Assembly: GCF_032191835.1 (NCBI RefSeq)
Contig: NC_083237.1
Location: 992,001-1,056,000 of the forward strand
DNA: 64,000 bases
Direction: 5' to 3'
Source of the DNA: Heteronotia binoei
Lineage: Eukaryota
The position numbers and the translations under genes are program-made. Under the pieces are notes generated by a model. It was not told where the DNA came from. It searched no databases and saw only the letters and a list, made by a program, of their open reading frames with translations. Below, one piece after another: positions 285 through 58,239 of the stretch. Each line of letters begins with the position of its first letter. Position 1 is the first letter of the stretch.

Positions 285-3200
285 TCACGGGCGGTGGAAG
301 TCGATGCTGGCGTACGTGTGGCGGGCCCCGCCCTGGCTGGGGGCAGCAGCAGCACACAGGGTGGGGCCCCCCTCTGCGTGGGCCTCCTTCACCAGGTCGA
401 GGTCAATATAATTCAGCCCCAGCTCAGTCTGGGCCTCATGCGGCTGCCCTCCGCTCCACTCCGCCTCGGAGTCCTGGTGCTGCCTTCCTTGAGCCTCTGC
501 TTGCACAGGGCAGGTCACTGGCACCGTCGCACCATCGCCAGCAGGCCCCACCCCCTCGCTGGCCTCCGCCGACACAGCTTGGCGTTCCAGGTGGGCGCAG
601 CCGGGGGCTCTGGGGTCGTATTCAATGCTGACGTACTCCCCAGAGCTGTGGGGTGCTGCCAGTGTGCCTCTTCCCCCCACAAGCAGCTTCAGAGGGGGCC
701 GGGCCAAAGTGCCCGCCAGTTCTTCCAGGCTGTCCGAGCTGGCGGAAGAGGAGCTGGAGAGGCGTCCCGGGTGGAAGGGGAAGGAGAAGGGCCTCTGCCC
801 ATGCCTGTAGGAGCGGGGCAGGGAGTAGAAGGGCGGGGCCAGCAGGGGGCTGTACTCCGGAGGGGTGCTGGAGGCGGAGCGGCTGAAGGGAGACATGTTC
901 ATGTAGTCGCCCTGGCCAGGCCCGTCTGGAGAGGAGCTCCCGCTGGGGGACATCAGCATATAGCCCCCGCTCTCCTGGGGAGGGGAGATGCTGCCTGGGG
1001 TCATGGGGAGGTAGGCTTGGCCCTCGGTCACGCCAGGCAGCATGGCCATGTAGCCGGGCTCAGCGCTGCGGTTGAGTCCTTCAGGGTAACTGGCCGAGGC
1101 AGCTACCGGCTTGAGGGTCAGCTTCCAGGGGGGCAGGCTGTCTTTCTCCAGGGCCAGGGGGGGCAGCGAGGCCCTCTTGTTGGGCCCCCACTTGGCCAAG
1201 CCGGGCCCGTCCGGCCGAGCCAGCTTGCCCATGGAAATGTAGTCTGCCACCAGGTCGCTCAGCTGGTCTGGAGTGTGGGGTGGGTGCGAATCCCCCGGGC
1301 TCGATCCCCCCTCATCCGAGGAGACGGCGCTGTAGTCGCTCAAGGAGCCTGGCTTCTGCGGCCTCGCCCCCTTTTGCCTCGGGGGGACGGGGCTCCGGCT
1401 CAAGGCGAGCATCCCCTCCGGGGGGCGAGGTCTCCAGGGGAAAGCCGCCTGGCCTGGCGGGGGGGCCCCGGGGGGCTGCTGGTGGCGAGAGGGCACGGAG
1501 ATGGGGGTGGAGGCCGGGCTCTTGCCGGGGAGGCGGCACTCCTCGCTGAGGGCCTTCATGGCCTCCAGGATGGTCTCGTGCATGCTCTGCGCCACCACCA
1601 GGTCGTCCACTTGCATCCAGAGCTCTCCAGGGCCCGTCACCGCCGAGCGGCCCACCTCCATGAAGAAGAAATTCTCCGAGTGGCCGCAGCGCCGGACGTT
1701 GAGCAGCTGCAAGACCACGGCGGCCACGGCCGTGTTCAGCTTCACAAAGCTGATGGTCTTGTCCGTCAGGCAGAGGAGGTAGGTGCCGGCCAGTTGCCTG
1801 GTGTGGCCCAGACCTCGGGGCCGGAGGCTCACCTGCCAGACCTCCTTGAAGGTCGGGCCGGAGAGCGTGGCGGAGTCTCCCTCTCCCTCCAGGGGGGCGT
1901 TTCCTGCAAGAGAAGAGAACAGGAGCGGCGCTGAGCAGGAGCAGGCCAAGAAGGGGCTCAGGGGGAGAGCTGCTCGGCTCACAGAAAGCTCCAAGTTCAA
2001 TCCCCGGCAACAGCAGCAGCTCCAGTTAAGGACCAGGGCTCAGGTGATGGGCGGAACTAGACTGGGACCGAGTGCCCTCTAAGCTGAGTTAGCATATGGA
2101 CATCTGAAGCTGCCTTCTACTGAATCAGACCTTCCTGGGCCCCTCAAAGTCCCACTCAGCCACCGTCCCTCCCCTCATATGAACATATGAGGCTGCCTTA
2201 TACTGAATCAGCCCTGGGCCCATCAAAGTCAGTATTGTCTACTCAGACTGGCAGCGGCTCTCCAGGGTCTCAAGCTGAGGTTTTTCACACTTATTTGCCT
2301 GGACCCTTTTTAGTTGGAGATGCTGGGGATTGAACCTGGGGCCTTCTGCTTACCAAGCAGATGCTCCACCACTGAGCCACAGCCCCTCCCCTACATATGA
2401 AGCTGCGTTCTACTGAACCAGACCCTCCCTGGGTCCCTCAAAGTCAGTCTTGTCTACTCAGACTGGCAGCAGCTCTCCAGGGTCTCCAGCTGAGGTTTTT
2501 CACACCTATTTGCCTGGACCCTATTTAGTTGGAGACGCCGGGGACTGAACCTGGGACATTCTGCTTACCAAGCAGATGCTCTACCACTCAGCCACCGTTC
2601 CTCCCCTATGAGCAAGCTCACAGATTTTTAGCTTCCAGCTCACACATTTTTGTCTTAGCTCAGAAAGGATTGACCCCAGAGCACAATAATTTATGCTCAC
2701 AACTTTAATGCCAGGAGTTCACAAAGAAGGATTTTTGCTCACCAGAGTCTGCAACTTAGAGGGAACGTTGGCTGGGACCGTGGAGAGCGCTGCCAGCCTG
2801 AGTAGACGAGACTGACTCTGATGGACCGGGGGGTGGGGGGGCAGCCTGCTTTGGCAGAAGGCAGCTTCACAGGCTCATGTGCTGGGACTCCAGAGAAGGA
2901 GTCCCCCTCTCTCCCTGGGCCAGCTTCTTCGACTCCAAGCACACGGCCATCGTGCCAGTCTGGGCTAGGGGGAGCCGAGGGGAGACAGCAATCCGGAGAG
3001 GGGGGCATCCAGCTTCAGGGGCGACAGAAGGGCCTGTAAAACCCCAAAGCTGCTTCCTGCTGCCTCTTGGGTAGAGGAGTGGTTCATATCAAAGACTCCT
3101 CACCCGCATGCAGGGGAGGGGGCTGCTCTTCCTCTTTCGGCAGGCTGCTGGGTGATGGAGGAGCCTGGGACCCCCAGCCTGCCCCAAGAGCAAGAGGAGA

Positions 3201-6200
3201 GGGTCCAGCCAGCACCTCTGAGGCGGTGCCTTGCAGCCCTTCTGACAGGTCTCAGCACTGTGCATCCTCCAGGAGGTGCCTTCGCTGATGATAAAAAGGT
3301 AAAGGTCGTCCCCCGTGCAAGCACCAGTCGTTTCCGACTCTGGGGTGACGCTGCTTTCCTGACGTTTTCACAGCGCTTTTTGATGGAATGGCTTGCCATT
3401 GCCTTCCCCAGCCATCTACACTTTGCCCAGCAAGCTGGGTACTTATTTTACCGACCTCAGAAGGACGGAAGGCTGAGTCAACCTTGAGCTGGCTACCTGA
3501 ACCCAGCTTCCGCTGGGATCGAACTCAGGTTGTGAGCAGAGAGCTCAGACTGCAGTACTGCAGCTTTACCACTCTGCGCCACAAGACGGCTTCACTGATA
3601 AGACCCCTCCCCCAAACCCCAGATGCCCTAGGCAAAATGCACCTGCTTCTGGGGAGGGGGGTGAAGCCATCTTCAGCCCCTCCAGCTCCTGAGGTTCTGG
3701 CTGCTTCTTGGCTCCTCCTGCCAGTGGGGGAAGCAGCCGTGGAAGGGGAAGGATCTGGGGCAACTAACGGTGGTGGTGGGGAGGTTATGCCTGGGGGGGC
3801 TGGAAAGCAGACAAACAAACAGGTCCCCAAAGAGCTGGGTACTCTGGCAACCCGTGCCTGTCATCCTGGAAAGATGCAAGCAGTTGCCATGGAGACGACT
3901 GGGATGGGATGACTTTCGTGGAGGTGAACACCAGGTCTCCAGACAGAGCAAATGTTTAAGCTAAATAGTTCTGGGAACCAGGAGAGGTAAACAACTCCCA
4001 GGCAGGAATGGCCCCTGGAATCTGGCTGGTGCCCCCCCTCCCGCCTCTGCCAGTCACATGCATGGGCCACAAAGCGCCCCCCCCCAACTTCACTCCCACC
4101 TGCCTGGAGAACTGCTGGCTGCTAAGCAAACCTGCTCTTTCTAGCCCCCTCTGCCGCCCAGCCCCCGCTCCACACCGGGAATAGGACCCAGGGAAAAGTA
4201 CACCATGTACCAGGCAGCGCATACCAGCTGTGCACACACCCCGAGTGTTGCAAGTCAGATCACTGGGGAAAGAGAGTCAACAATTGGCATGGGGGGGATG
4301 GGTACTGGAAGGAGCTACATTGAATGGGGCGGGGCGGGGGGAGAGAACCAGGGCAGCTCAGGGCCCAGGAATGAACGGAGACAAAAATCAGGGGCTCTGC
4401 TCAGGGGTTGACCCCCCCCGCCCCCCTAGAGCAGAGTTCGGCTGGAGGCTCCTTTCAGCAAGCCACCAAGTTATGGCCTAATTGCATGGTCTGGTGTGGA
4501 AGCCACTCTGCCCTCTGCCCTGCAGCAATGCCCAGGGGAACCCACGCCCATTGGCCGCCCCCCTCCAGGCACAGCACTTCCAACTAACCCAGAAGCCTGG
4601 GAACAAACCTCCACGCCCCAACTGACAATCACTTCAAGCACTCCAGGACAGAGGCTGCCCTAACAGCTGCTCCTCCCCAGAAACAGCTGCAATCTTCCCT
4701 GGAGAACGAGTAAAAAAAGAATCTTTTGCATGCCAGGTCATTGGGGATTGGGGGGGGGGGAGGCAGCCTGGAGATTCAGTCCAGTCTCTCCTGCAGTCTG
4801 GGCCTGCCCCCTCTCTGCCCAAGGTGCAGCACAGAACCTCCAGGCCATAGAGGGCTCCCCACCCCCACAGCCCCCTGCCAAGAGGGGGGGAAGACAGGCA
4901 AGGAAACCCTTTGCTGAAAGCCTTTGGCTTTTTATAACTTTTTATGTCCTCCCTGTTAGGTCTTGTATTTCTGCCATAAACCACCTTCAGGTCCATGAAG
5001 GGGAAAGGGCAGCTCATGAATGTTTCAGTCAATCAATCAATCAAATGGCAGGAAGCCCCCAACTTCACCCTTCCTTTGGGCAAACAAGCTGCCCATTTTT
5101 ACCCCGGGGGAGACGGAGAGCTCTGCTCAGCCAGGAGGCTGGAAGGAAGGAGCCCTTTGCTTCACGAAGCATTTCCAGGGCAACCAAAGACTCCAAAGGT
5201 GAAGAGAAAAAGCAGCCCCCAGCAGTTGCATTAGGAGGAAGGCCTGCTCTGCAGGGAGGCTGTTCGTGGATCACTGCCACGCCCGCTGCAGACACCCAAG
5301 ACCCAGCAGGGTTCACACCAACCTCCAGTTGGAGAATCTGAACTCAGTGGGGCCCAAGAGCCGGCTGGGGGTCACCAAGAGGATCCAGTGCCCACAGAGG
5401 AAAGGGGCACCTAGAGGAGGGCACTGAAGCCGGGGCGGAGATGGGTGACAGGGCGTGGGCCTTGAGAAACAGGTGTGTGTGGGGGGGGGGGGAGAATGAG
5501 GGGCAGGTCAGGAAGACAGGTTGCAACCCACAGAGTTACCCTGAGCCACCCGGATCTTTCCTCATGCGCATGAGCTGGCTCCACCACACAAATCCCACAC
5601 TGGAGGTTTGTGATACACCCGTTGCCGTGGCCCGTCTATTCAGACTGGTTGGCTGTGTTGCACTTTGTTTCCCTCACTTTTCCTTTTGTGAAAAAGGCTC
5701 CTTTAATCCCGTATCCTAATATGCAAGCAGAATCCGATTGAAAGAAGCCGTCTGGGTCTGTTCAACGACCTATTGGGAAAGGCCTGATTTGCCAACACAA
5801 GAGCCAGAAAGATCCCAGGCACCCAAAAAAGGGTACTGAAACCAAAAGTGTTCCAAGTTGGGTATCCTGAATTTGGGTTATCCCACCTCAGTCAGCCTAC
5901 AGGTGGAGCAAGAAATGATGATGATGATGATATTGGATTTATATCCCGCCCTCCACTCCGAAGAGTCTGAGCGGCTCACAATCTCCTTTCCCTTCCTCCC
6001 CCACAACAGACACCCTGTGAGGTAGATGAAGATATTGGATTTATATCCCGCCCTCCACTCCGAAGAGTCTCAGAGCGGCTCACAATCTCCTTTCCCTTCC
6101 TCCACCCACAACAGACACCCTGTGAGGTAGATGAAGATATTGGATTTATATCCCGCCCACCACTCCGAAGAGTCTCAGAGCGGCTCACAATCTCCTTTCC

Positions 6201-7327
6201 CTTCCTCCCCCACAACAGACACCCTGTGAGGTAGATGAAGATATTGGATTTATATCCCGCCCACCACTCCGAAGAGTCTCAGAGCGGCTCACAATCTCCT
6301 TTATCTTCCCCCCCCACAACAGACACCCTGTGAGATGGGTGGGGCTGAGAGAGCTCTCACAGCAGCTGCCCTTTCAAGGACAACCTCTGCCAGGGCTATG
6401 GCTGACCCAAGGCCATGCTAGCAGGTGCAAGGGGAGGAGTGGGGAATCAAACCCAATTCTCCCAGATAAGAGTCCGCACACTTAACCACTACACCAAACT
6501 GGCTCTCCACACCAAACTGGGTCTCCAGTTTGGGGGGGGGGGGGGAAGGCAGAGGCCAAGAAGTCCAGCAAACTCTCTTCTGCTGCTCCCACTGAAGCTC
6601 CCAGGGCAAAGAAATCATCTGTACCTCAAAGCAATGATAAGCAGAGAGGCCTGGCCTGCAACTCCAGCCCCCAGGCTGTGTGGGGCTTAGAAAGTCAACA
6701 CCAGCACTCTGAATTGAGCCTGGCAACAAATGGAGAGCCAGAGCAGAGGGAACCCACCTGCAGTCCTTACGGCCTCCAAGACCCACTGCAAGCCACACCC
6801 TGGCCCTGCCATTCTGTGCCCACCACTTGGGCAGCAGTCTTCGAGGGCAGCCCCACATGCAAGTGCGCTGCAGCAGTCTAGTCTCCCCGTGACGAGAGCA
6901 GGCCCTGCAGCGCTGCTGCCCAGGGCCTGGCAAGACCCACTCAAGGCAGGCAGTCCGGGGGCTAAGAGTTCGGTAAGCCCCCCGCCCCGCCGCGCCACTC
7001 ACCCTCGCGGTGCAGCTCCACCAGGGCGGCGAACCAGGCCTGCTGCTGCTCGGCGTCCTCGGCGGCCACGCCGAAGGTGCCGTCGGGGCCGCAGAGGACG
7101 AGGAGGTGCCTGTGGCGGGCGTCGGCCCTCTTGCTGATGCTCAGCGCGGCGGCCAGCGGGAAGGCGCGCTTGGGGCGCGAGCTGGGCGCGCGGAACTTCT
7201 TCTCGCTCTCGTAGTACTCCAGGCGAGCCGGGCCGCTGCGCAGCACGAAGTAGCGCCGCCGCTGGGACTTCTGCTTCCGCAGGTAGCCGCACAGGCGCAC
7301 GTCCGAGGGGGGCCCCGCGCCTTCCAT
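285..7327 (-). CDS. IRS3: Insulin receptor substrate 3, intact; coding exons 7003..7327 (PH domain) and 285..1903 (PTB domain + tail), 647 aa
   Basis: Exon 1 reads [30 protein letters not shown]...[12 protein letters not shown]; [16 protein letters not shown] is IRS3-type rather than IRS1-type. Donor G|GTGAG at 7003/7002 and acceptor CTTGCAG at 1905/1904 join in phase 1. Exon 2 holds the IRS PTB domain (FKEVWQV...[31 protein letters not shown]), five YxxM motifs, NYIDLDL and TYASIDF. The PH/PTB intron and the position beside AGFG2 fit IRS3. Confidence 0.93.
2069..2770. mobile_element. hAT-like non-autonomous DNA transposon (TIR ~CARTGTTCCCTCTAAG) interrupted by SINEs
   Basis: Left end gagtgccctctaagctgagttagc, right end cttagagggaacgttg; the body resumes at ~2607 after the SINE cluster. 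Confidence 0.6.
2094..2606 (-). mobile_element. Three tandem tRNA-derived SINEs, family B (first one internally deleted)
   Basis: Reverse complement of a tRNA-like head GGTGGCTCAGTGGTAGAGCATCTGCTTGGTAAGCAGAAGGYCCCAGGTTCAATCCCC with tail ...AAGGCAGCTTCATATGTTCATATG. Confidence 0.85.
3293..3590 (-). mobile_element. Sauria SINE
   Basis: aaaggtaaaggt is the reversed (ACCTTT)n tail; the other end is a tRNA-like head GTGGCGCAGAGTGGTAAAGCTGCAG...GAGTTCGATCCC. Confidence 0.75.
5915..6510 (-). mobile_element. MIR/CORE-like tRNA-derived SINE (family A) with 4 tandem copies of its 3' 104 nt
   Basis: GATATTGGATTT unit starts at 5929, 6031, 6136, 6240; SINE head (reverse of GAGAGCCAGTTTGGTGTAGTGGTTAAG) at ~6480-6510; (ATG)n tail at ~5916-5930. 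Confidence 0.85.
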
Positions 7328-7725
7328 CGCCCCCGCGGGCACAAGGCCGCCCTCAGCGCCCCATCGCCGGGCGGGGGCAGCTTTTGCCAGGCCGGCCCGT
7401 CCTCCGGCTGCCGCCTCCTCCTCTTGCCACCTGGCCGGGGGGCGGGCGGGAGAGGGCGCAGCGGCTGCACCCCAGGGGGGCTCTCCTCCCCCCGCGCCCG
7501 GGAAGGCTGGCGAGGCCGGCTCTGCAGAGGCTGCCGGGCCCCGGGGGAGGGAGGGAGGGAGAGGCTCGCGGGGCCTGCTGCAGCCGGGCCCCTCTCCTCT
7601 CCTCTCCTCTCCTCCGGCTGCTTGGCTGGCCTCGCGGGGAGGCGCCGCCAGAGCCCTTTGCTCCCTGCCCGGGCAGCTGCTGCGGGGCTGCGGCGACTGG
7701 CCCACCGCGAGAGGCGCACAGGCCA

Positions 7726-9445
7726 CACGTGTCCGGCGAGCGGCTCCCTCTCTCCACGTGTCAAGAGCAAGAGCGAGCCCAGGCCGGCCGCGCGCCCCTC
7801 TCCTCTCCACGCCTCGCCTCTCGCGGGCGGCTGCTGCAGCGGGCGCCCCCTCCTCCCCCCCCCCCCCGGGCCGGGCGCAGGCAGCCGAGCCAGCAGACAG
7901 GCCCGCCCTGCACTCGCCGCCGCCGGTATTTATAGGGCCCTGCAGCCGCCGCCGCCGCCCCGCCGAGGCCCTAGCGCCTGACCGCGCGCGCGGGTGACAC
8001 GTGTCGGCCCGCCTCGTCCCCAGACGGGAGCCGCCTCCGGCAGGGCGCGAGGCCAAGGGCAGGCGGGGCGTTGCCAACCCCCCGGAGAGGCCGGGAGGGA
8101 GGGCGCCTCGAATTCCACCCCCCCCCCGCTCTCCAGGCCGCAGAGACCCCCTGGACGGAGGGAGGGCGCCCTGCGGCGGAGGTCCTTCCCCTCCCCGCCC
8201 TTGGCGCCGCCTTCCAACCCCAGCAACCTCGCTAAACAAGCCGGTGGGGAGGGAGGGATAAAGGCCTGGCCATTTATTGGGGGGGGGGGGGCTCATGAGA
8301 TGCGCTTGACCGCCCAGGTGCCAAACGCTTCAAGTGCCCATTCCTGCCCATCCAGCCTTTATTAAGGGGAATGGGACTTTTTCTCAAGGTCAGTTGGCAC
8401 CCTGGTCTTCCTCCGTTCCGTTTCAGCCGGCGTGACTGCGGCGTGTGAACACGTGGCGGGGGCGCAACGACGAAACTGGGACATCGACCATGCCCCGGCC
8501 CTCCCCACCGCCGCGGGTTCCTTTCCTCTCTATCTAACCACCCCCCGACTCCCCTGGACGTGGTGGGTTTCCCCGCCGCCCCAGTGCGGCAGAAAAGAGC
8601 CCAGAGTTTTGGAGAGTCGCTGCCGGCAGCCGCCACGTCTTCAGGCCCAGATCCCTCCTTCTGGGGACTGCAGTGACTCCCCGAAGCTCCTCCCTCCTTG
8701 CTGTAAAAAGAGAGCACGTGTGGATGCTCCTGAAAGGTTTGCGGCAGGGGAATTAACCCGGGTGGAGTGGACGGATAGAAAGCAGATCCTCCCCTGCACC
8801 GCAGAGGCTTCTTCGTGGCGGCCCCGCCAAGTCTCCCGCCCCAGCAGCCTTGGCCGCTCTGCAGGGCACAGGAGCAGAGGAGGGACAGGCCCTAGAGAGG
8901 GGCTGCCTGCCTCCCTGCCCAGAGCGGCCCGGGAAGGGCTTCTTCGAGGCCCGCAGGTGACGTGGGAGCGGGGGCGTTTGCACAGGCCGCGCCCCTGCCT
9001 GGGACGGGCTTGGGAGGATGCGCGAAACACGCAACGCCCAATCCCCCCTCCCCGCGAGTTCTTCTGGCCCCGGGGGGAGGGCTGTTTGGAGCGAGGTTGC
9101 CAACTCCCAGTTGGGGAAGGCCTGGAGATTTGGGGGGTGGGGCCTGGGCAGGGTGGAATTCGGGGAGGGGAGAGTGTCGTGCCATAGCGGCCCATCTCTC
9201 CAGGGGAACTAGTCTTCCTCATCTGGGGATCAGCCGTAATAGCAGGTCTCCAGGACCCACCTGGAGGTTGGCCTCCGTAGTTTAGAGAGTGTCAGGGCAG
9301 CCCTTGGACGGGGTTTCAGACACAACGTTTTTACGGCATCAGTCTTTTGAGAGTGGAGATGGCCGGGCTCGAACCAGGCACCCTGCGTTCGCCAAGCAGA
9401 AGCCCTTCCAAAGAGGCGGGGCCCCAGCGCCAGACGTCACGTGAC
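7726..9445. promoter_or_regulatory. IRS3 CpG island / promoter with TATA box and six CACGTG E-boxes
   Basis: TATAAAT on the - strand at 7928-7934; CACGTG at 7726, 7755, 7998, 8450, 8715, 9438; high CpG density from about 6950 to 9650. Confidence 0.65.
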
Positions 9446-14644: not shown

Positions 14645-15215
14645 GGAGAGCCAGTTTGGTGTCGTGGCTAAGTGCACGGACTCTGGGAGAACTGGGGTTG
14701 ATTCCCCACTCCTCCACTTGCACCTGCTGGCATGGCCTTGGGTCAGCCATAGCTCTGGCAGAGTTGTCCTTGAAAGGGCAACTTCTGGGAGAGCTCTCTA
14801 AGCCCCACCCACCTCACAGGGTGTCTGTTGTGGGAGAGGAAGATAAAGGAGATTGTAGGCTGCTCTGAGACTGTCCTTGAAAGGGCAGCTGCTGTGAGAG
14901 CCCTCTCAGCCCCACCCACCTCACAGGGTGTCTGTTGTGAGGAAGGAAGGGAAAGGATATTGTAGGCTGCTCTGAGACTCTGTCCTTGAAAGGGCAACTT
15001 CTGGGAGAGCCCTCTCAGCCCCACCCACCTCACAGGGTGCCTGTTGTGGGGGAGGAAGGGAAAGGAGATTGTAGGCTGCTCTGAGACTCTGTCCTTGAAA
15101 GGGCAGCTGCTGTGAGAGCCCTCTCAGCCCCACCCACTTCACAGGGTGCCTGTTGTGGGGGGAGAAGATATAGGAGATTGTAAGCTGGTCTGAGTCTCTG
15201 ATTCAGAGAGAAGGG
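14645..15215 (+). mobile_element. Family A SINE with 4 tandem 107-109 nt internal units
   Basis: cacagggtg at 14815, 14922, 15031, 15140. Confidence 0.85.
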
Positions 15216-15440
15216 TGGGGAGGGACGGTGGCTCAGTGGTAGAGCATCTGCATGGGAAGCAGAAGGTCCCAGGTTCAATCCCCGGCATCTCCAACTAAAA
15301 AGCGTCCAGGCAAGTAGGTGTGAAAAACCTCAGCTTGAGACCCTGGAGAAAGAGCCGCTGCCAGTCTGAGAAGACAATACTGACTTTGATGGATGCAGGA
15401 GGTCTGATTCGGTATAAGGCAGCTTCATATGTTCATATGT
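15216..15440 (+). mobile_element. Family B tRNA-derived SINE
   Basis: GGTGGCTCAGTGGTAGAGCATCTGC...GGTTCAATCCCC head; CATATGTTCATATG tail. Confidence 0.85.
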
Positions 15441-15829
15441 ATAAATCTGCAGTCGTCTTCTTCTGAATAGTGAGCAGTGAGTCACAAAGGCCCATCCTGC
15501 CACACATCTCGTGAGTCTTTCAGGTGCTGCTGGCCTCTGGCTCTTTGCTACAGCTGCAGACAGACTCTCATCTGGAGAACAGGTTTGATTCCCCCCTCCT
15601 CCACACGCCCCTGCTGGCCATGGCTCTCTTGCATTCATTCTCCCGGGACTGGCCCTCTGATCACTCAAGAGATTTTGCAGGAAAGGAACTGCAGCCCAGG
15701 CCCCTTGCTCTGGCAGTGGCAGGGAGCAGTTCTGCTCTGGGGGGGGGGGCAGGGGGGTCAGGTGAGAGCTGCTGGCATCAGCCCTGAGGTCACAGAGAGG
15801 CCTTCCTCCTGCTGGGGCAGGCTGCCCCC

Positions 15830-16771
15830 ATGGTGCCCTGGGCCACTCTGGGCCTGGTGGCCCTGAACGTGGCCCTCTTCTGGCACCCCATCCGGTCTCC
15901 CGGCGGCTCCTGCCTGAGCGTGCAGACGGTGTGGGAGCAGGGCCAGTGGCACCGGCTGCTCCTGGCTCCTTTCCACCACCTGAGCCTGTGCCACCTGCTG
16001 ATGAACATGGCCACCCTCTTCTGGCTGGGCAGGGGCATGGAGCAGGAGGTGGGCAGCCTGCGGACGGGCGCTGTGCTGCTCCTCCTGGCCCTGCTGGGGG
16101 GGCTGCTCCACCTGGCCCTCAACGCTTTCCTGGCCGTGGCCACCGGGCACCCGTGGTACTGGGAACACTGCGCCGTGGGATTCTCAGGTGCGCTTCCTCC
16201 CCGCCCCCTCCATGCATGGCGGCAATGGGCTCACACAGGGGCCCAGGCTGCAGCCCCCAAATCCCCGGGGCTCACTGCCCGGCCAGGGACGCCTGGGGCC
16301 TCCGGCTGCTAGCCCTCCCTCCCTCTGGTGCCACGCAGGGGTCCTCTTCTCGCTGGAAGCCATGGGCCGGCAGGTGGAGCCCTTGCCGGTGGCCGTGTTG
16401 GCCAGCGGCGTCGCCTTGACGACCAGGTGGCTGTGCATTCTGGAATGCCTACTGCTCGCCCTCGTCCACCCCAGGTAGGCCCAGCAGGAGGGAGGGAGGT
16501 TGGCCAGCTCCAGCCCTTTCGGGGAAGCGGCCAAGCGGGGAGGCAGTCTGGGTGTGCTCAGAGGAACGCTTCAGTTTCCAGGGCAAAACCCCAGCCCGCC
16601 TCCCCATAGCCCTTTGTCAGGGGCGGGAGGGCAGGCCATTGCAGGCGGGAGCTGATGCACACGTCTCTTCCTTGCAGGAGCTCCTTTACGGGACATGTCT
16701 CCGGGATCCTGGCTGGGCTAGCCTTGTCCGCCTCCCCCTTGCAGCTTGGCAGTGGCGGCAGCAGCAACTGA
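15830..16771 (+). CDS. Rhomboid intramembrane serine protease, RHBDD1 (RHBDL4)-like paralogue; exons 15830..16187, 16339..16474, 16678..16771; 195 aa
   Basis: Exon 1 has WHRLLLAPFHH, HLLMNM and CAVGFS; donor at 16188. Exon 2 (after CCACGCAG) is GVLFSLEAM...LVHP; donor GTAGG at 16475. Exon 3 (after CTTCCTTGCAG) is RSSFTGHVSGILAGL. Phases 1 and 2 join without stops. These match the RHBDD1 motifs WQRLLLSPLHH, HLYFNM, CAVGFSGVLF and TSFAGHLAGILVGL (RHBDD1 sequence from memory). The start codon is uncertain. Confidence 0.85.
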
Positions 16772-19700
16772 GCCTCCTGGACGATGTGCTTCCTTCGCAA
16801 TATAGTCTTACCCCCCTCCCTCCCACGCCTGGGTCTGAGATTTAAGCGGGGGGGGGGGGGGAGGAATACTGCACCTCCCGACAAACAAGGTCACACCGGT
16901 TGGGTGCTCCTGCATCCTGGTGGCGTGGGGGGCTGGAGGAGGCAGTGACTCCCTGGCACAGCCGGCCAAACACGTGTGAATGCGCGTCGCCCTTGCAGAG
17001 AGAACGGAGGCCGGCGTCCCAGGCTCTTGCCACAGCCAGGGAGCCCAGGCAGGCGCCCAAGTCCTTTCCCTTCCCTCCACTCAGCACAAGGAGGGCAGGC
17101 CCAAGGCCTGCCTGGAGTAGTTATGTCTGGGCAGGAGGAGCCAAGGAGAGGCCTTCAAACCAGGGCTCAGGGGGTTAGACCTGCCCACTCTACCTTGAGA
17201 AATTTCCGGAAGGTTTTTTGGGGGAGAGGGTGGGGGAGTTGCCTGGGGAAGGGGAGTTTAGTGGAGATGATACCACTCCAGCACTTCATTTTCTCCCAGA
17301 CTCTGTTTACCAGAGTCTGCACTTTCCTTCAGTGGAAACTGGTATCTGTAGTCTGGAAATGTCCAGGTGAGTCAAAGTTTCTGCCTGGTGGCACCTTTAA
17401 AACCAGCTGAGTTTTATTCTGGGTACAAGCATGCACTCGGAAGCTTCTACCCAGAATTAAAAATTGCTGGTCTTACAGGTGCCTGACAGGTTTGGAAACA
17501 AGTTGTACCTCCAGAAGGATTCGAGGAAACTCCAGGAGGTCTCTGAGGAGGCAACAAAGTGCTAGCCTGAAGAGACGGGCCCCCCTGAGCGCAGGAAAGG
17601 GCTCTGAGAAAGGGGGCTGGCTGAGATGGAATTTAGGCCTGCAAATTGGGAGGAGGGCTCTCTGCTTTGATCTAACCCAAGAGAAGCACACAGGGGCACC
17701 CCATATCCTCTGCAAGCACGGCAGCCACGCCTTCTGCCACGTCACGGTGAGCCTTGCTTTCTGGACACAGAGGCAGATAACCCTTCCACAGGCAGTCCAT
17801 TGGAGGAGACTGTGCCCTTCACACCCCAGTCTTTGGAGGAGGTTCAGGAAAAACTTAATCTGACTCCTTTTAGACAGGAGCATGGAGCCAGGCACCCCCC
17901 CCCCACCACACAGTGCTTTGGGTGCAAACAGCAGGGTGATTACTAAACCAAAGGGTGTTGCCAGTCTTCCGCCCCCCCTTGCGGCAACCTCCTGGCTCTG
18001 CGACATGAGCACACAGAAGCAGACGTGACAGACACAGAAAGAGTGGGGAGAGATTTTTAAAGAGAGATTTTCATATCCATCTTTCCAGACATTTCCAGTG
18101 CAACAACTTTGTGTGCCCGTGAATACTATATCTATATATATAATTTGTGAGTATAGAGATATACATATATATCTTTAAAAACATAGTCCACACTTTTCTT
18201 TTTGAAAATATAAATTCCAGTCTTGATTCAGGGAACATGGCTCCACTCTTCTCAGGGAGACCAGAGGTTACAAAAGCAAGCCCCAGCAGAGATGGCAGGC
18301 TGGGAAGGGGAGGGACCTTTGAGGAGAGCCCTGGGATTGTGTCAGAAGCCACAAAGGGGGGGGACAGGAGGGGAGCAGCAAATTAAAGCAATTCCCCCCC
18401 TAACCCCCCCCCCCCAGTTTTCTTAAAATGTTTTCCTGTGCAAAACCCCTCCAACATTTAATAGGACCTTTGCCCCCACTTCTGCCGCACAAATCCGTGC
18501 TGCTCCCAGCCAGATGGGAATTCAGTTAGCCAAAGTGCAGTTTGCTCAGCTTTTGTGAAATCCCAGGCCGGCTGCTGAGTGCCTTTACCTCGGCTTCTGA
18601 CAACTGGATCCAAGAGGCTGCGTGGAAGAGGCCCCTGAGGGGCGGTTCTGGTGAGCTGGGAAACACGGAACACTGCAGGCGGCAAAGGCAGAGTGGCATT
18701 TCGGGTTGGGGTGGGCAGCTGGGGCAAGGGGCCCTCTTCTCCCCGTTCAAGCAGGCTCGGAGGTTTCCAGAGGGTCCCTTTTCTGGAATGGGGAGGGAGG
18801 GCAGGGTCTGCTTTAGGCCACCTGGCCGGTGGGGGGGGGGGAATTAAGCAGGACAAGGCAGGTGGGGGGGCAGCTGCAGTCTCCAGCTTCACACACTTGT
18901 GAGTTTTGCTCAGCAGCAAGCACATGCCAGTCCAGCCCAGGTCCCTGGGGGCAGCACAGAACACAGCCCTCAGTGGAGGCCGGGGGCAGCTCAAGGGGGT
19001 GCTTGCTGGGGCAGCGAGCCCTACAGACACGAGACCCCAGGCAGCTCCCTCAGATATTATTGCCCCTCCTTCCCTCCATGGCATCCATGCAGGGGTGCTG
19101 CAGAGACTCTTGCAAGCCCGCAACTGCCCGAGCCACTAACCATTTGTGCAATTACTGAGAGAAATGAGGGGGGGGGGGGTTTGATGAAAGGCTGGTGCTG
19201 TGGCTTATTCTCACTCCATCCACGGAACTTGGAAGCCTCCCTCTGGCTAAAAACCCACACAGTGGAATTCTCGCAGCAGGAGAACCGGAAAGCAGAAAAG
19301 CAAAGGGATCCTGCTAGAGGCCAAACAGAAGAGTGAACCTTGGCCCTTGGCAATCCACCAGCGCCAACAGCAACGGCTGCTAAGAGACTGGCAGGGGGGC
19401 GGCTGAAGAGGAAGCTCTTGAGATTGGAGCAGACTCAGACTCCAAAGAGAGTTCCCTTTTCCCAGCATGCACGGCAGCAATAGCCTCAACTTTGGCATCA
19501 TGTCCCAGCATGCACTGCAGGGGGAAGGGAGAGCCTCTCCAGCCGTTCTTAAGGTGCTTGCTTGAGCCTGTCACTTCCCTCCCTGCCATCTTTCTCCTAG
19601 CATGCACTGCTGCTGGATTTCCAGCAAGCCCCTAGCTTCCATTGAGAGCCCCACCATGCATTGCTTTGAGCCAGGCCCGCTCTTCAGCAGCCAGTAGTTA

Positions 19701-19854: not shown

Positions 19855-22800
19855 CTATAAGAAAGGATTGGTGGGCGGCTGCTTCCCCAGAGCGAAGGGG
19901 ACGGGTGGCGCTGTGGTCATCGGTGTCTGTGAGGGAGAGACAGAAAGGCTGGTGAGCGGTGGGCGGCCAGGACACCCCTGTGCCAATTAAGTCCCTGGAC
20001 AGTCACACCCAATGAGCTCTCTAAGCAGCTTGGAATACACAGGATGGATGAAGGGGAGTTCTCAGATCATTTTTCACCTTGGGTGGGATGGGGGCATAGC
20101 TTTCTCCTTCAGGGCACCCCCTGCCCCAAAGATCTCTGGTATTGATTCTGTTGCCCGGAATGCAAAGAGGTTGGCTGTAGGGCAGGTATACTGGTCACCA
20201 AGGACAGCAGCAGACACCCCGCCCAGTCTGCTGGCGGTGTGGAGTGCCCCTCCCTGGGCTGAGTCTTCTGGGGGACTTCAGCCGGATGACCCCTCCTCTT
20301 TGCAGAGGAGGGCTCTGGTGTCTTCCACAGCACCAGATTGTATCAAGTCTCGCGTATCCATCAGGCCACATGCTGCCTTGATCTTCAGGATGGGGATAAA
20401 AACCTGGATCTGTTCACCACTTGACGAGGTGCCATTTTGCCCACCCAAGCCCCTTCCTGCATCGGCCACAGCCGATTTATGCTCCCTCACAGAGACTAGT
20501 GGACTCCTTTGGGTTCCAGAATGTGCTTCAGGATTCTATCCCTCCACCCCTCCCCCCGGTGACCCGTTAGATGAGCTGGCAGAGGACTGGAATCTCCGTC
20601 TCTCTGAAGCCACTGGCGAGGCTGCTCCCCAAGGTCCTCTTTGCCCGGTCCGAAATATGCCACGGAGCTTAGGAGGATGAAACTGGAGCTAAGACGACAA
20701 GAGCAAGTCTGGCGGCGACCCTGCAATGAAGCTGCAAGAACGTCTTCTGGGACGTTTATGAGATGGTGGGGAAGACCACGGAAAAGGACTTTTAGGCAGC
20801 CTCCATCGCATCCGCTAGCTCTTGCCCAGCACCATTTCTTAGGATCATTGTCATTAACTTCCATCAGAGAGAGTCCAAAATGTTATGAGATTCAGAAATC
20901 AGGTGTGAGGCCTTTGCAAGCTTCTTTGCAGATAAAATCTTGTCGCTCTGCCAGGACCTGCTCGCCAACCTTTGGGAGTTTAGGAACTGGAGGCCCCTTG
21001 GCTGTCTTTAGGCCCAACAGTGGACAAATTCAGCCAACTCTCCTGGGATTCTGGATGCTGCAAAACCTACCATGGTGTATGGCGTCCTGCAAGGAGCAAT
21101 CCTCTCCCCAATGCCCTCTTGGCCAGCTGGTGCATTGTTTTGGGCTGGGTTCCCATCAATATGCTGATAGCTCCTAGCTGTATCTGTCAGTGATTCAAAT
21201 GGGACCACCCCTCTCCTCCTCACCACACACACACACACACACCTCCCCCAACCCCTCTCCCCCACCAGAGGGGAAGGAAAGAGGGCTCCTTACCACAAAC
21301 GGGTTGGTTGAAATGCCCACTGGTTGTCCAACTTTGGTTATAGGAAATCCACCAAAGGGGGACCCTAAAGCAAGGGGAGAAGCCAAGCAACAGAAGGCCA
21401 GCTTCAGAGCGGGGAGGAAAAGTCACCCATGTCCCTCCCCTTCTCCTTTTCTCCCTCAGAGGATCTGGAGACGTCTCCAAAGGAAGTCCTGGTGCAGAGT
21501 CAGACTGGCCTTCCTGGCTTGGCCCATCTGGAACTGTGGGCCTCATGAGGAATTAGCCATCTGGTCCACCTGGCGCACCCGTCCCCTCTGGCCTCCAAGC
21601 TACCCCTCCCCCTTCATCTCCCCTATGACTGAGGGAGCCTGGACTCTCCAAAGCTCCTATCCTGGACATCTTGTTAAGACTGAGCTAAGGGAGAGATGGT
21701 GGTTCAGTGGTAGAGCATCTGCTTGGTAAGCAGAAGGTCCCAGGCTCAATCCCCGGCATCTCCAACTAAAATAGGGTCCAGGCAAATAGGCATGAAAAAC
21801 CTCAGCTTGAGACCCTGGAGAGCCACTGCTGGTCAGGGGAGGGACAGTGGCTCAGCGGTAGAGCATCTGCTCGGGAAGCAGAAGGTCCCAGGTTCAATCC
21901 CCGGCATCTCCAACTAAAAAGGGTCCAGGCAAGTAGACCCAGGAGAGCAGCTGCCAGCCTGAGCCACACACCCTCCAGTCCCAGAGCTTCATGGTGGGAC
22001 TCCTCAGACAGCCCCCTGGAAGCCCTGCCCATTTTGCAGACGAGGAGAGGAGCCTCAACTGCTGATGTGGAACATGCAGGAGACAAGAAAGGCGAGGGAA
22101 GGAAGGCGGGAGGGAGGGACCAGGCCCCCTAATCTGCTTCCCGCATCTTCACAAGGGCTACTCACCCCCGTTATGCTGGTGCCCCACCAGTGCCTGTGGG
22201 TGGAACTGCTGCTGCTGCTGCTGCAAGGGTGAAGCGAAGAGGCCAGAGAGGGGGGAGGCAGAGAAGCCGCCGGGGGAGCCCACCACAAAGGTGCCTGCAA
22301 GAAGAGAGCCAGAGGGAAGGACCTCACAGGAAACCCACAGCCAGTCAAGAGTCTCCGCTCCCAGCTGTGCCCAACACCCTGCTCCATGTTCGGAATACTG
22401 CAAGAAGTCACTCGGTGGGCCAGTGGCAGCTCAGACTCTTCCATGAGGCCACTGGCCTCACCTGCGCAGCTGCCATTTTACCAGAACCAGAGCTGGGGAA
22501 CCCACTTCCTACATTCTTTGTCACAGGATGTTTAAGGTTTATTCAGGCCCAATTAAACTACAACAAGAACCACACTCCCATCCTCTAAGCTCCAGCTTCC
22601 TGTCAATGGGCACCTCTTGGGCATTTGAGGCATAGCCGCATCCCCATGAGAGGCACTGACTGACACACCACCCAGCCAATGAGCAGGCAACTGTTTGGTG
22701 GTTTCTCGGGTGGGATTCTGTTCCACCTCTCTGCTGGGGGCTTCTGAAGAGGTGGACGAAAGAGAACACAGAAACAGGCCCTGGGCAACCATGCAAAAAT

Positions 22801-25800
22801 CGCAAATACCGGCTAGTAATCTAACTAGGAGCATGAAGACTTAACCAGCAGGGTAACAAGATATCCCATGAATTCAAGAAGTAAGGAAGAGAAGAGGGTA
22901 AACAGAGACAACAGAAAACATTTCCTCAACCTCCCGTGCTCCTCCTCCCAGTGAAGGAAGCCATCATCCCCACGGCCACCACGAAGAGCATTTGCGGGGT
23001 CTTTCAAGTAACAAGGGGAACAACCTCCCACTGCCAAGACGGTCTGTGTTGTCCAAGTGGGTTGATTTATACAGAGATGAGCCAGGGGCTCAAGGGCATT
23101 GTCTGAACAAACAGAATGTGAGCAGCGCGCCAAAAGGAGGTGGGGGCGGCTACAAGCACAGCCAGCTTCAAGAGGAGATTGGATAAAAATATGGAGCAGA
23201 GGTCCATCAGTGGCTATTAGCCACATATATATACACACACACACACATATATTGGCTACTGTGTGAAAGAGTTAGACTGGAGGGGCCACTGGCCTGATCC
23301 AACATGGCTTCTCTTCTGTTCTTATGTGACACAGAGTGTTGGACAGGATGGGCCATTGGCCTGATCCAACATGGCTTCTCTTATGTTCTTCTGTGACACA
23401 GAGTGTTGGACTGGATGGGCCACTGGCCTGATCCAACATGGCTTCTCTTCTGTTCTTATGTGACACAGAGTGTTGGACAGGATGGGCCATTGGCCTGATC
23501 CAACATGGCTTCTCTTATGTTCTTCTGTGACACAGAGTGTTGGACTGGATGGGCCACTGGCCTGATCCAACATGGCTTCTCTTCTGTTCTTATGCGAGAC
23601 AGAGTGTTGGACAGGATGGGCCATTGGCCTGATCCAACAGGGCTTCTCTTATGTTCTTCTGTGACACAGAGTGTTGGACTGGATGGGCCACTGGCCTGAT
23701 CCAACATGGCTTCTCTTCTGTTCTTATGCGAGACAGAGTGTTGGACAGGATGGGCCATTGGCCTGATCCAACAGGGCTTCTCTTATGTTCTTATGTGACA
23801 CAGAGTGTTGGACTGGAGGGGCCACTGGCCTGATCCAACATGGCTTCTCTTATGTTCTTATGTGACACAGAGTGTTGGACTGGAGGGGCCACTGGCCTGA
23901 TCCAACATGGCTTCTCTTCTGTTCTTATGTGAGACAGAGTGTTGGACAGGATGGGCCATTGGCCTGATCCAACATGGCTTCTCTTATGTTCTTATGTGAC
24001 ACAGAGTGTTGGACTGGAGGGGCCACTGGCCTGATCCAACAGGGCTTCTCTTCTGTTCTTATGTGACACAGAGTGTTGGACTGGAGGGGCCTTTGGCCTG
24101 ATCCAACAGGGCTTTTCTTATGTTCTTATGTGACACGGAGTGTTGGACTGGAGGGGCCATTGGCCTGATCCAACATGGCTTCTCTTATGTTCTTATGTGA
24201 CACAGAGTGTTGGGCTGGATGGGCCACTGGCCTGAACCAACAGGGCTTCTCTTCTGTTCTTATGTGACACAGAGTGTAGGACTGGATGGGCCTTTGGCCT
24301 GATCCAACATGGCTTCTCTTATGTTCTTATGTGACACAGAGTGATGGACTGGATGGGCCGCTGGCCTGATCCAACAGGGCTTCTCTTATGTTCTTATGTG
24401 ACACAGAGTGATGGAATGGATGGGCCACTGGCCTCATCCAACATGGCTTCTCTTATGCGACACAGAGTGTTGGACTGAATGGGCCATTGGCCTGATCCAA
24501 CATGGCTTCTCTTATGTTCAAAATATTTGCACCATTCCAACCATACAAAAAGAAGCACAAACTTCTGGGATAAATTTAAACACAACAAAACTCAATCTTT
24601 AAACCTTTTAAACAACCAAATACCTTTGTATTTTCAAACAGTGCAGTTTTAGGCCTGGTTTAAACTATGGCTGGGCTGGGGCCTCTATGGGAGGCGGCTC
24701 ATGAACAGCGTCTCACTTACACGGTGTTGCTCTCCAAGCACATCAGCTGCATCTATGCAAACTTTTGCAGGAGAAAGCTTTTGCCTTGCATTTAAATCAA
24801 GACTTACCTGGATCCACGAGGGTCATTGGGGGTTGCAGGTGGAGGGGAGGCGGAGGGGGGCCATCTCTCTGGGAAACAGGCAACCCCAAACCTCCTGCCT
24901 CGTCGTCCTTCTCCCCCCCCTTCTCCCATAACCCCCTGGGACAGGAAGATGAAGAAAAGGCTGGAGGAGGCTTACCTGGGGCCAAGCCGTTGGTTTGGAA
25001 AGGGTTCGTCGAAGGCAGCGTGGGCTGGGAAATAGCAGATGTCGCAAAAGGGTTGGTGCATGCTGCAAGTGAAAAGAGAGCGGTAGCAGAGGGGGCAAGC
25101 AGGCCAGCTGCCCCTTTGGGGGAAAGATACGGAAGAACTTACCCCCATAGGCAGCGGCTGGGCTGGGCGGAGGCAAAAGCGGTGACTGGCTCAGGGCACC
25201 AAAGACACTGGCAAAAGAAGAGATGGGCTCAGCACAAAGAGCGGCAGCCACTCCCTTGGCTCTCTCCCATCAGGGTGCAGGGGGGTCCTGAGGCCCCTCA
25301 TCCAAACCCCCCCCCCCCCGACTACACCACAGAGGCCGGCCAGCCAGCCTCTGCCATCTGGATAGGCAAAGATCTGAGCTCCTGCAAAAAAGCCCCCATG
25401 GGACAGCTGACTCTGAGGGACTCGGACAAGACCATCCGCCTGCAGCACAGGGGGGCAATCTGCTGAGACAGACCCTTACCGAGAGGAAACACAATACCTG
25501 CTTGGGACTCCGCCCACTCTGAAAGCCCCACCCATTTCTGGAATGCTCACTCCTGGCTGGCTGGCTGGCGAAGCGGGGAATCCGCCCATGTGGGTGCCAC
25601 CTGGAACAGGGAGGAAGAGCACGATGAAGCGGGATGCCTGGAAGGCTAGGTCGCTTCTGGACCAAAAGGGATGGAGGAAGGGGAATGTCCGCCACCGCCC
25701 TGTACTGAGAACAAAGCAATCCTGACCTAGAAGGCAAGAAGTCCAAGGACTCAGTCTTCATGGGTTCCCCACACACAATCTCCAAGCCTGCCTCTCCCCC

Positions 25801-28800
25801 GCCCCCGCCATTAAGGAATCCTGGTTTTTCCCACCCCAGAGGGCCAGTCCCCTGTCCAAAGGCGCCCAAGCTGCCCACCACCTGCAAGCAGCCGAAGCAT
25901 TACCTGCTGCGATTGGCTGGCTCTGGAAAGGGCTCGGACTGGAGGGCAACGGGTCCCCAAAGGCAGACACTGCGGGATTTCCCCCAAAGGCATCAAAACT
26001 GGTGAAAGTGGCGTGGGCTGGCACCTGACCTGGGAGAGCAACAGGGGAAGGCAGAGCTGCGACATCTGAAGCTGCCTTCTACTGAGTCAGACCCCCCTCA
26101 GTCCATCAAAGTCAGTCCTGTCTACTCAGACTGGCAGCAGCTCTCCGGGGTCTCAAGCTGAGGATTTTCACGCCTACTTGCCTGGACCCTTTTGAGTTGG
26201 AGATGCTGGGGATTGAACCTGGGACCTTCTGCTTCCCAAGCAGATGCTCTACCACTGAGGTGGCACAAGACCCCATCTCCCCTCCAGCTGTGGAAGGTCT
26301 CTCTAGCTGAGAACAACATTCTCCCAGGAATGCCGCTTAGGGAAGAATGCGATTGCCACACAAGACCTCACTTCTTCAGCCTGAGTTCGCACGCACACAC
26401 TCTCCCACACGGCAGGATTTCACTCACCACCAAAGGCAGGGAAGGCGGTAAAGGCCGGTCCAGACTGAGGGGCAGCAAAGGGGTCGCCCCCAATGTCGGC
26501 CAGAAGGTCCATGCTGGCTTTCTTGGCTGGCTGAGGGCCTTGCAGCTGGGACTTGTCCACAGACTGGAAGACAAAAGCTCATCAACCCGAAGGCCACAAA
26601 TCCCCTCCCCACCAGTTAGCCTTCTTCCCCTCCCCACCCACACTGGGGGACAGACCCTGGCAGGCGTCCGGGCCGCCGCCTAAAAGGAAACTGCCTTAAG
26701 AGCACGTTCAGATCAGCAAACAGGCAGCCCCAGCACAGAAGTAAGGATCCCAATGAAGGGATGGCCATGCGTGGTTTTTGTGCCAGCTGAGAGAACAGCG
26801 AGGCCAAAGTTCACCATCTCCTGCCCCTCTCGGAAGAGGCCAGCTGCTCTCTTGCCAGGGACCTGGAGCTCATCTCCACATCCACACCAGGGGTGTGGCA
26901 AGCTGCTGCAAGTGACTTGGCCTCCTCTCTGGACCTGCACCCGGGGAGCCTTCATTATCAGGCGAGGGGGGAGGAGCACTGGCAAGCACAGCAAGAGGCC
27001 ATAAGAGCAGAAGCGGGATGAAGCCACGTTACTAAAAAGTTACTCATGGGATGCTTCTGTTTCTTTCTGGTGGTTCCAAACTTCTACTCTCCTAAGGCGT
27101 TAGTCCCTGAATGTCCTGTATTGTTGATTGTGCTGACTCACTCTGTGGAATCTGCCTTCAGTCCACGTGAGACAGGCAGGCGATCAACCATGTAAATAAA
27201 TAAATATCCCCCATCAGAGAGGCAGCCCCAGGGTGAGGCAGGCAGTGGGCACCATGCAAAGAACTCAGGACTCCGCAACGGGGAGGGGAGGGGAGGGGAT
27301 GACCCCAGTGGGCCAAAAGGCTAACAGGCTCAGGAAGGGGCCTTGAAGGCAATGCATCTCCTGGCCACACGCAACCCCCCCCCCCTTCACTTGTTCACAG
27401 CTGACATAAACTGGACTGGAGGACCGTTGCAGCAGGAAGATCCTACTCATCTCTCCATTCAAGAGTTATGTGCAGCAGTTCCAACCTGGGCAGCCTTCAC
27501 CGCTGTAGCCACTGGCCCCGAGTCCCCCAGCAGTGTCTTGACCTCTGTGGTGGAGCTCTGGGTAGCCAGAGAAGTTAAGCTTTTGCCTTGCTCCGGTGTG
27601 ACATACCTGCAGACAAAGCCAGAAGGGAGGATCAGTCACCCAGCATGGCCTCCCAGAGCCACCTTTCCTCCCCTCTTCCCCGTAAGCCTTGTTCTATTTG
27701 ACTATGCCTTTCGCAAATCCTTGTGAACATTTTGGCACAAGAACAAGTTAGGAAAGAGAAACCAATGACTCCGACATGCAACACTCTGTGCACCAGTTAA
27801 TCTTCCGGGGCAGAAATAAGAGCTCATTGCAGTGAGAGGGGCCTTCCCCAGACCCGCTTCTCCCTTGCCTCACCATCGCTTTTTCTCATATTTCTCCTGC
27901 AGAAACTCCTTCAACTTCTGAGGGTCCTGGGAATCCGGAAGCAGAGAGGTCCGCGAGTCAAAAGAGCCCAGCCAGATCCTTTGGCATGCCTGGCAGGGGC
28001 AGAGATGGAATCAGAGCGGACCACCTCCCTCTAAACCCTTCCCTCTCTCTGGCTCCACTTCCCAGCCAAAGCCCAGGGTCAGACGCCAGCCTCCAACTCA
28101 CCTGGTTCCCACGGGACTGGAGGAACTGCACCTCGCTCTCCGTGAAGGTTGTCATGGAGATAGATTTGACTCGGTGAGGGGGATTCAGGCCACGGCTGGG
28201 GGGGGGGGGGGGATGAGAAAAAGGAACAACTGATAGAGTGCAAAGTCTCAGCAGCCCCAAAAGAAACAAAACCAGAACTCCTGCTTTCTAGTCCAGTTCA
28301 AGCAACCACCTGTTCCAAGGGAGCCTCCTGCAGGAGGGAGGGAGGGAGAGAGGACTGACCCAGAAGGAGCACCCCCAGTCCCCCTCGCAGGCTTCTGCTG
28401 GCTGAGCGATGCCCTCACTTTCTGCTACACAGAACTGCTGACATACAAGTTCTTGGCCTGCAGCTGTAAATTATTCAGAGCCCTTGCATGAAATATTCAG
28501 AAAGCCATTCGTGCAGCTGCAGGCCTCATGTGAATGACCCACTTGGGGGCCCAGGCGGCTTGGGGGGGGGAGTCTCGGTGTGAGTCACACTTGCAGCTCT
28601 TCTTCACGAGGGCGTGCAAGCACCAGAGGGAGGTGCAAGGACCCCCTTGGGTCACAGAGGGGGCACAAGCGGGGTTATCTGCTGAGCACTGTCCAAGCCC
28701 TGCAAAGAGATTCTGGGTGTCATCCACAGCCTACCTGTCTGGCACCCCTACGCAGGCATGATGGAATTTTTGTCAGGAACTCATTTTGTCCCAGGCAAAG

Positions 28801-43743: not shown

Positions 43744-58239
<14,496 letters not shown>

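Follow-up and report, generated by a model that had tools for sequence, protein, structure and literature searches.

The structural archetype of rhomboid proteases is GlpG of E. coli. The ER rhomboid protease that acts in ERAD, RHBDL4, is encoded by RHBDD1; its ubiquitin-interacting motif (UIM) helps choose ubiquitinated substrates, and its p97/VCP-binding motif (VBM) recruits p97 (Bock et al., bioRxiv 10.1101/848754). RHBDL4 without the cytoplasmic domain still cleaves MHC202, with altered handling of substrate and fragments, and the non-proteolytic roles that have been proposed for RHBDL4 depend on a GxxxG motif (10.1101/848754). Recent rhomboid reviews cover the mammalian set only (PMC12476590, PMC12615303), and the name RHBDL5 is an alias of RHBDF2 (PMC12615303). 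The regions around IRS genes have been treated as paralogous blocks; the mouse Irs3 neighbourhood as listed is without a rhomboid gene, and the whole Irs3 region is absent from birds (PMC5482937). Full-text literature searches returned no published description of an IRS3-linked RHBDL4 paralogue, and the two rhomboid reviews (PMC12476590 and PMC12615303) gave no match to paralogue or gene-duplication terms.

The window analyzed here, a stretch of 64,000 nucleotides from the gecko Heteronotia binoei (NCBI RefSeq assembly GCF_032191835.1, contig NC_083237.1, positions 992,001 to 1,056,000 of the forward strand), contains a rhomboid gene beside IRS3. The gene is an unstudied, automatically annotated member of a well-known enzyme family and not a new kind of system. 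We think it probable that it encodes a functional, minimal, six-helix rhomboid protease without a tail, and that it is a paralogue of RHBDD1/RHBDL4 that predates the diversification of jawed vertebrates and most likely arose in the early vertebrate genome duplications.

The gene has three coding exons on the plus strand (358 + 136 + 94 nt = 588 nt) that splice to an open 195-aa product. Its features, in positions of the window, are:

15830 to 16187, plus strand: coding exon 1, beginning at the ATG and ending on base 1 of codon 120, with the donor GT at 16188; it encodes TM1, the L1 loop (W40/R42), TM2 (H55xxxN59), TM3 and the start of TM4 (G117-F-S119)
15992 to 16006, plus strand: codons for H55-L-L-M-N59, the HxxxN motif of TM2, with H55 and N59 invariant in the 68-protein alignment
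16184 to 16186, plus strand: codon TCA for Ser119, the predicted nucleophile (GFSG), in an alignment column without variation among 68 RHBDD1-type proteins ranging from sponge to vertebrates
16188 to 16338, plus strand: intron 1, 151 nt, GT..AG, phase 1, homologous to the first intron of canonical RHBDD1
16339 to 16474, plus strand: coding exon 2, 136 nt, encoding the remainder of TM4, the L4 loop and TM5 with the invariant E155
16475 to 16677, plus strand: intron 2, 203 nt, GT..AG, phase 2, homologous to the RHBDD1 intron at residue 189/190
16678 to 16771, plus strand: coding exon 3 with the stop, encoding TM6 with G170-H171 and G174xxxG178, and about 12 residues after the helix
16694 to 16696, plus strand: codon CAT for His171, the predicted general base, in an invariant alignment column
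16769 to 16771, plus strand: stop codon TGA, the end of the 195-aa frame

The spliced product was identical at every residue to the RefSeq model 'rhomboid-related protein 4-like [Heteronotia binoei]' of 195 aa (P0184). This agreement is far beyond chance; the three-exon gene is real and intact, and it was already predicted rather than unannotated. There is an in-frame stop 15 codons 5' of the ATG. The initial annotation had proposed three GT-AG exons joined in frame to 195 aa, and splicing and the RefSeq model bear this out. It had also placed a W(H)R motif, HLLMN, a GFSG nucleophile and GHVSG in the product, and each is found at the residues claimed: W40-H41-R42, H55-L-L-M-N59, G117-F-S119-G120 (intron 1 interrupts codon 120) and G170-H171-V-S-G174, with a spacing of 52 between Ser119 and His171.

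The product belongs, as judged by its domain match, to the rhomboid intramembrane serine proteases (PF01694, MEROPS S54). Exon 1 alone matched the Pfam Rhomboid domain PF01694 with an E value of 2.5e-13, and the full product matched with an E value of 5.2e-19 and 69.3 bits (cut-off 22.6) over residues 37-183, covering positions 1-138 of the 143 in the model. AlphaFold2, run on the alignment of 68 sequences, predicted a six-helix rhomboid core (pLDDT 89.3, pTM 0.84) with helices at residues 4-18, 53-74, 76-105, 119-128, 148-162 and 168-183. The closest fold match to this model was human RHBDL4, residues 30-210, with a TM score of 0.86 and 37% identity. Among PDB entries, Foldseek matched crystal structures of E. 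coli GlpG (E value 3e-5, TM score about 0.6), and the family profile also matched GlpG in a search of PDB sequences (E value 6e-6); a direct search of PDB sequences with the single 195-aa sequence gave no match at an E value of 0.01. Like GlpG, the gecko protein has a six-helix core of similar size with Ser on TM4 and His on TM6. Unlike GlpG, with which it shares about 20% identity, it does not have the separate cytoplasmic N-terminal domain that belongs to the bacterial enzyme. Derlins and iRhoms also resemble the predicted fold, but more weakly.

The catalytic and structural residues of rhomboid proteases are all present. S119, H171, H55, N59, W40, R42, G174 and G178 are invariant in the aligned family, and 18 columns are invariant across the 68 aligned RHBDD1-type proteins. 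What we infer for this protein extends from catalytic activity to membrane compartment and substrates: it would fold like the RHBDL4 core, and a Ser119/His171 dyad, aided by H55 and N59, would cut membrane-embedded or membrane-proximal substrates. Alternatively, the protein could have a mainly non-cutting role, either as a derlin-like factor for membrane thinning or retrotranslocation or by pairing or competing with RHBDL4 as a protein without a tail. The GxxxG motif needed for the proposed non-proteolytic roles of RHBDL4 is kept in the gecko protein, and this reading would also fit the weaker fold resemblance to derlins and iRhoms and the relaxed constraint described below. As a rule, a pseudoprotease has lost its Ser, its His or the GxSx context. 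In the present case, ten positions of catalytic or structural importance (W40, R42, H55, N59, G117, S119, E155, H171, G174 and G178) were kept in every one of 23 'like' proteins from across the jawed vertebrates, 14 from reptiles (turtles included), a caecilian and the coelacanth and nine from sharks and rays. We therefore consider a mainly non-cutting role quite improbable, and proteolysis by the predicted dyad remains our preferred reading.

Close relatives of the gene are found in many squamates and turtles. A HMMER search with exon 1 returned first a set of close relatives of 178-217 aa and then RHBDD1-type proteins at about 40% identity. The close relatives are annotated as 'rhomboid-related protein 4-like' (the 'like' proteins) in the squamates Gekko, Paroedura, Podarcis, Hemicordylus, Sceloporus, Pogona, Phrynocephalus and Naja and in the turtles Chrysemys, Mauremys, Gopherus, Lepidochelys and Pelodiscus. 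Models of the same name occur in the caecilian Rhinatrema, in Latimeria and in many sharks and rays; the caecilian and coelacanth proteins are more distant members of this group, and those of sharks and rays probably are too. The initial annotation had described the gene as kept in the gecko's own lineage, which is too narrow for a distribution over squamates, turtles, a caecilian, the coelacanth and sharks. In predicted proteomes of mammals, birds, crocodilians, frogs and ray-finned fishes we did not find the IRS3-linked rhomboid. The proposed loss in mammals agrees with the absence of the gene from the predicted mammalian proteomes in protein databases, the material that the search covered. 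In the model from Pogona vitticeps (P0182, 246 aa) about 50 residues spanning TM2-TM3 are repeated internally; the repeat is an artefact of assembly or annotation, or else a true duplication within an exon.

The exon structure and the order of neighbouring genes are conserved. By exact spliced mapping, the three-exon structure was found again in all five species so mapped (Heteronotia, Gekko, Paroedura, Sceloporus and Mauremys): exon 1 measures 358 nt in every squamate of the set and 370 nt in the turtle, while exon 2 is 133-139 nt and exon 3 is 82-97 nt long. Annotations of Paroedura and Mauremys show the order IRS(-)/rhomboid(+)/ArfGap(-), and those of Gekko and Sceloporus show rhomboid(+)/ArfGap(-). 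Four chondrichthyan genera have both RHBDD1 and the 'like' gene (in the same species in three of them, and in two different species in Mobula), and the two types are reported on contigs that differ in length. At four shark and ray 'like' loci there was no neighbouring gene within the 10 kb flank.

The gene is under purifying selection, as judged from codon substitutions. dN/dS (NG86) was 0.20-0.43 among squamates and 0.48-0.60 to turtle, and YN00 values were lower. The values of 0.5-0.6 to turtle indicate that constraint is relaxed, and along the path from gecko to turtle the branch lengths show the 'like' clade evolving about 2.7 times faster than RHBDD1. DNA contigs of related species, drawn from four public sequencing runs, were 85-95% identical over the three exons, with the alignment lost in the introns and no indels inside the rhomboid exons of these contigs. 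The initial annotation had taken frame-breaking changes in close relatives, together with a lack of spliced reads, as the mark of a pseudogene, and had suggested a dN/dS comparison. Neither result points to decay: there were no such changes, the frame and splice sites were intact in five genomes, and dN/dS was below 1. These findings bear on the possibility that the gene is a decaying or unexpressed relic that gene predictors picked up through homology alone. A feature that would fit a relic is that no AATAAA follows the stop codon, where we found only ATTAAA, at 17456 and 18382. Against it stand the intact frames and splice sites in all five genomes, the full-length predictions of the IRS3-linked rhomboid in about a dozen species, the dN/dS below 1 and the invariant catalytic residues, and we give this possibility almost no credence.

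The rhomboid gene is part of a block that has a counterpart elsewhere in the gecko genome. Its neighbours in the window are:

285 to 8296, minus strand: IRS3, head-to-head with the rhomboid gene (Pfam IRS, E value 2e-21; PH, E value 3.1e-08)
285 to 2000 and 6962 to 8296, minus strand: the IRS3 open reading frames found with Pfam, a PTB exon and a PH exon, respectively, with the PH domain near 7013-7321
21285 to 27623, minus strand: AGFG2, convergent with the rhomboid gene, found by tblastn with the open reading frames of the turtle ArfGap gene (L013)
21285 to 21395, 25494 to 25628, 26483 to 26536 and 27483 to 27623, minus strand: the exons of AGFG2 matched in that search
45674 to 47119, minus strand: the large exon of NYAP1 (Pfam NYAP_N, E value 2.6e-57, and genome search)

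The block on this contig (C15 in our numbering) thus reads IRS3(-), rhomboid(+), AGFG2(-), NYAP1(-), and the IRS3 exons are 67-71% identical to the gene upstream of the turtle orthologue of the rhomboid. A search of the whole genome with Pfam gave 11 rhomboid-domain matches. Canonical RHBDD1 lies on another contig, at C6:101.011 Mb (+), where its exon 1 is 84% identical to RHBDD1 of Paroedura and further exons lie at 101.0127, 101.0201 and 101.0240 Mb. The PTB exon of IRS1 is at C6:100.9636 Mb (-), about 47 kb from RHBDD1, again in a head-to-head arrangement, and NYAP2 is at C6:100.20-100.23 Mb, on the IRS1 side of RHBDD1, giving a block of NYAP2, IRS1(-) and RHBDD1(+). The initial annotation had called for a canonical RHBDD1 beside IRS1 in the same assembly, and this is what we found, head-to-head and with NYAP2 near. 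The gene beside IRS3 is 37-38% identical to RHBDD1 on C6 and has IRS3 and AGFG2 as neighbours, which upholds the view of it as a second RHBDD1-type copy. The idea that it is the sole RHBDD1 of this genome is rejected by the separate copy on C6.

The two genes share their intron positions. Intron 1, at codon 120, aligns with RHBDD1 residue 145, and intron 2, at codon 165, with residue 189; the exon matches of the gecko's RHBDD1 break at the same two points. A retrocopy of RHBDD1 is excluded, as both introns are retained at homologous positions. The stop codon aligns with RHBDD1 residue 219 or 220, which is the end of the match to the third coding exon of RHBDD1; the gene therefore corresponds to the first three coding exons of RHBDD1, with the tail exons absent.

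Phylogenetic analysis placed the 'like' proteins outside the RHBDD1 proteins of jawed vertebrates. The tree was made from 68 proteins and 275 columns with LG+C20 PMSF and was rooted on 15 invertebrate homologues, including those of Saccoglossus, Owenia, Amphimedon and Ixodes. The vertebrate RHBDD1-type clade was separated from the invertebrate homologues with support of 100/96. Within it, a gnathostome RHBDD1 clade (96/96) held four shark and ray RHBDD1 proteins together with those of ray-finned fishes and tetrapods, and a 'like' clade (95/71), inside vertebrates and outside gnathostome RHBDD1, joined the shark 'like' proteins to those of coelacanth, caecilian, turtles and squamates. Because it falls outside the 96/96 clade, the rhomboid beside IRS3 is a separate paralogue and not an orthologue of RHBDD1/RHBDL4. 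The tree puts the duplication node after the invertebrate split and before the jawed-vertebrate radiation, and orthology of the shark and sarcopterygian 'like' proteins has moderate support from it. When either 'like' clade was removed, the other still fell within vertebrates and outside gnathostome RHBDD1.

These results also bear on whether the gene is instead a lineage-specific duplicate of RHBDD1, made in sarcopterygians or reptiles, that evolves fast and looks ancient through long-branch effects. The stem branches of the 'like' clades are indeed long (0.65 and 1.23), and some rows have a biased amino-acid composition. However, an AU test rejected a sarcopterygian-specific duplication, in which the reptile and coelacanth clade joins tetrapod RHBDD1 (p = 0.013), branching within the sarcopterygian part of the 'like' clade, between coelacanth and squamates, agrees with the species tree, and the place of the gene beside IRS3 matches the paralogon. 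A shark-specific duplication was not rejected (p = 0.06). We regard a lineage-specific duplicate as very unlikely; the gene is neither the sole RHBDD1 nor a recent copy, two of the outcomes that would have spoken against the initial annotation.

The reading that we prefer is that the RHBDD1 paralogue stayed head-to-head with IRS3 after the early vertebrate genome duplications, which would mirror RHBDD1 with IRS1. The ohnolog reading proposed at the outset is supported by the tree, by the paired IRS-rhomboid blocks and by the rejection of a sarcopterygian-only duplication; the whole-genome-duplication origin itself is what we infer from them. An ancient small-scale duplication, or a later move of the gene to its place next to IRS3, would account for several details: the tree of 68 proteins does not place the duplication relative to lamprey, and the NYAP genes lie on different sides, NYAP2 on the IRS1 side on C6 and NYAP1 on the rhomboid side on C15. 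Furthermore, the genome has two more IRS genes, at G000:C1:19999706-20098906 and G000:C11:12736498, one of which adjoins a gene with an NYAP_N domain, presumably MYO16. The whole-genome Pfam search gave no rhomboid-domain match near either of them, which leaves a rhomboid in only two of this genome's four IRS regions. On the other hand, at least three families (IRS, NYAP and rhomboid, leaving out AGFG1 on C6) were duplicated together between C6 and C15 with the IRS-rhomboid pair still head-to-head, both introns were kept, excluding retroposition, and the IRS regions are paralogous blocks in published work (PMC5482937). Taken together, we consider a small-scale duplication or relocation unlikely, and the pairing with IRS3, mirroring that of RHBDD1 with IRS1, is a clean synteny marker for the IRS paralogon.

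The IRS genes of the gecko differ in how their domains are encoded. In IRS3 the PH and PTB domains are in separate open reading frames about 5 kb apart, and the turtle orthologue (L013, 1915-5312) has the same split, at about 2 kb. In each of the other three IRS genes of the gecko genome, one open frame of 1147-1202 aa surrounds the PTB domain.

The gecko protein is without the cytosolic tail that carries the UIM and VBM of RHBDL4. It resembles RHBDL4 in its core (35-38% identity, and the predicted-fold TM score to the human protein given above), its WR, HxxxN, GFSG, GH and GxxxG motifs, its two intron positions and its head-to-head pairing with an IRS gene, and differs in having 195 aa rather than about 315, no N-terminal extension of about 25 residues, and no cytosolic tail, UIM or VBM. 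From the GH motif to the C-terminus there are 26 residues in the gecko protein and 18-27 in the amniote and coelacanth 'like' members, in which we found no match to a UIM or VBM pattern. Both patterns matched in lamprey and in many RHBDD1 proteins. The shark 'like' proteins retain a tail of about 70 residues. Several shark and ray 'like' proteins (P0197, P0200, P0202, P0203 and P0205) end in an arginine-rich stretch, RRQRRRC or RRQRKRY, which resembles the RRQRL core of the p97-binding motif of RHBDL4; there was no UIM-like match in them.

The closest laboratory counterpart of the gecko protein is the delta-C truncation of RHBDL4, which likewise is a core without UIM and VBM. Delta-C is an engineered human construct of residues 1-268 that retains the N-terminal part and some of the tail, whereas the gecko protein, 37% identical in the core, stops right after TM6. 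Since it has no tail with UIM and VBM, choice of ubiquitinated substrates and recruitment of p97 as in RHBDL4 would not be possible. The protein would act as a natural 'delta-C' RHBDL4, clipping substrates with no direct link to their extraction or to the proteasome; if so, it would be a natural separation-of-function version of RHBDL4. Its naturally tail-less core offers a test of what a rhomboid core does without ubiquitin and p97 coupling.

A wider scenario, to which we give even chances, is that ancestral vertebrates had a further active rhomboid besides RHBDL1-4 and PARL, namely this RHBDL4 paralogue, which was kept in sharks and rays, coelacanth, caecilian, turtles and squamates and disappeared in separate events from mammals, archosaurs, frogs and salamanders, and ray-finned fishes, and that amniotes shed the ubiquitin/p97 tail and thereby uncoupled cleavage from ERAD extraction. 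An extra ancient RHBDL4-type enzyme would alter how many active rhomboids are counted for the vertebrate ancestor and would add one more case of differential ohnolog loss.

We made several further observations in the gecko genome. Two of the rhomboid-domain matches, at G000:C11:53955697-53956101 (L008) and C11:74827672-74828076 (L009), cover model positions 4-139 without interruption. One of them carries a TGA in frame, and the pair may represent a rhomboid gene without introns and its copy. In the window, 14743-15300 on the minus strand, immediately upstream of the IRS3-linked rhomboid, contains a cluster of short repeated units with near-identical translations of their open reading frames, which looks like a run of SINE-type elements. 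Runs of ten or more G residues flank the gene, at 15740-15750, before the start-codon region, and at 16850-16865, about 80 nt past the stop.
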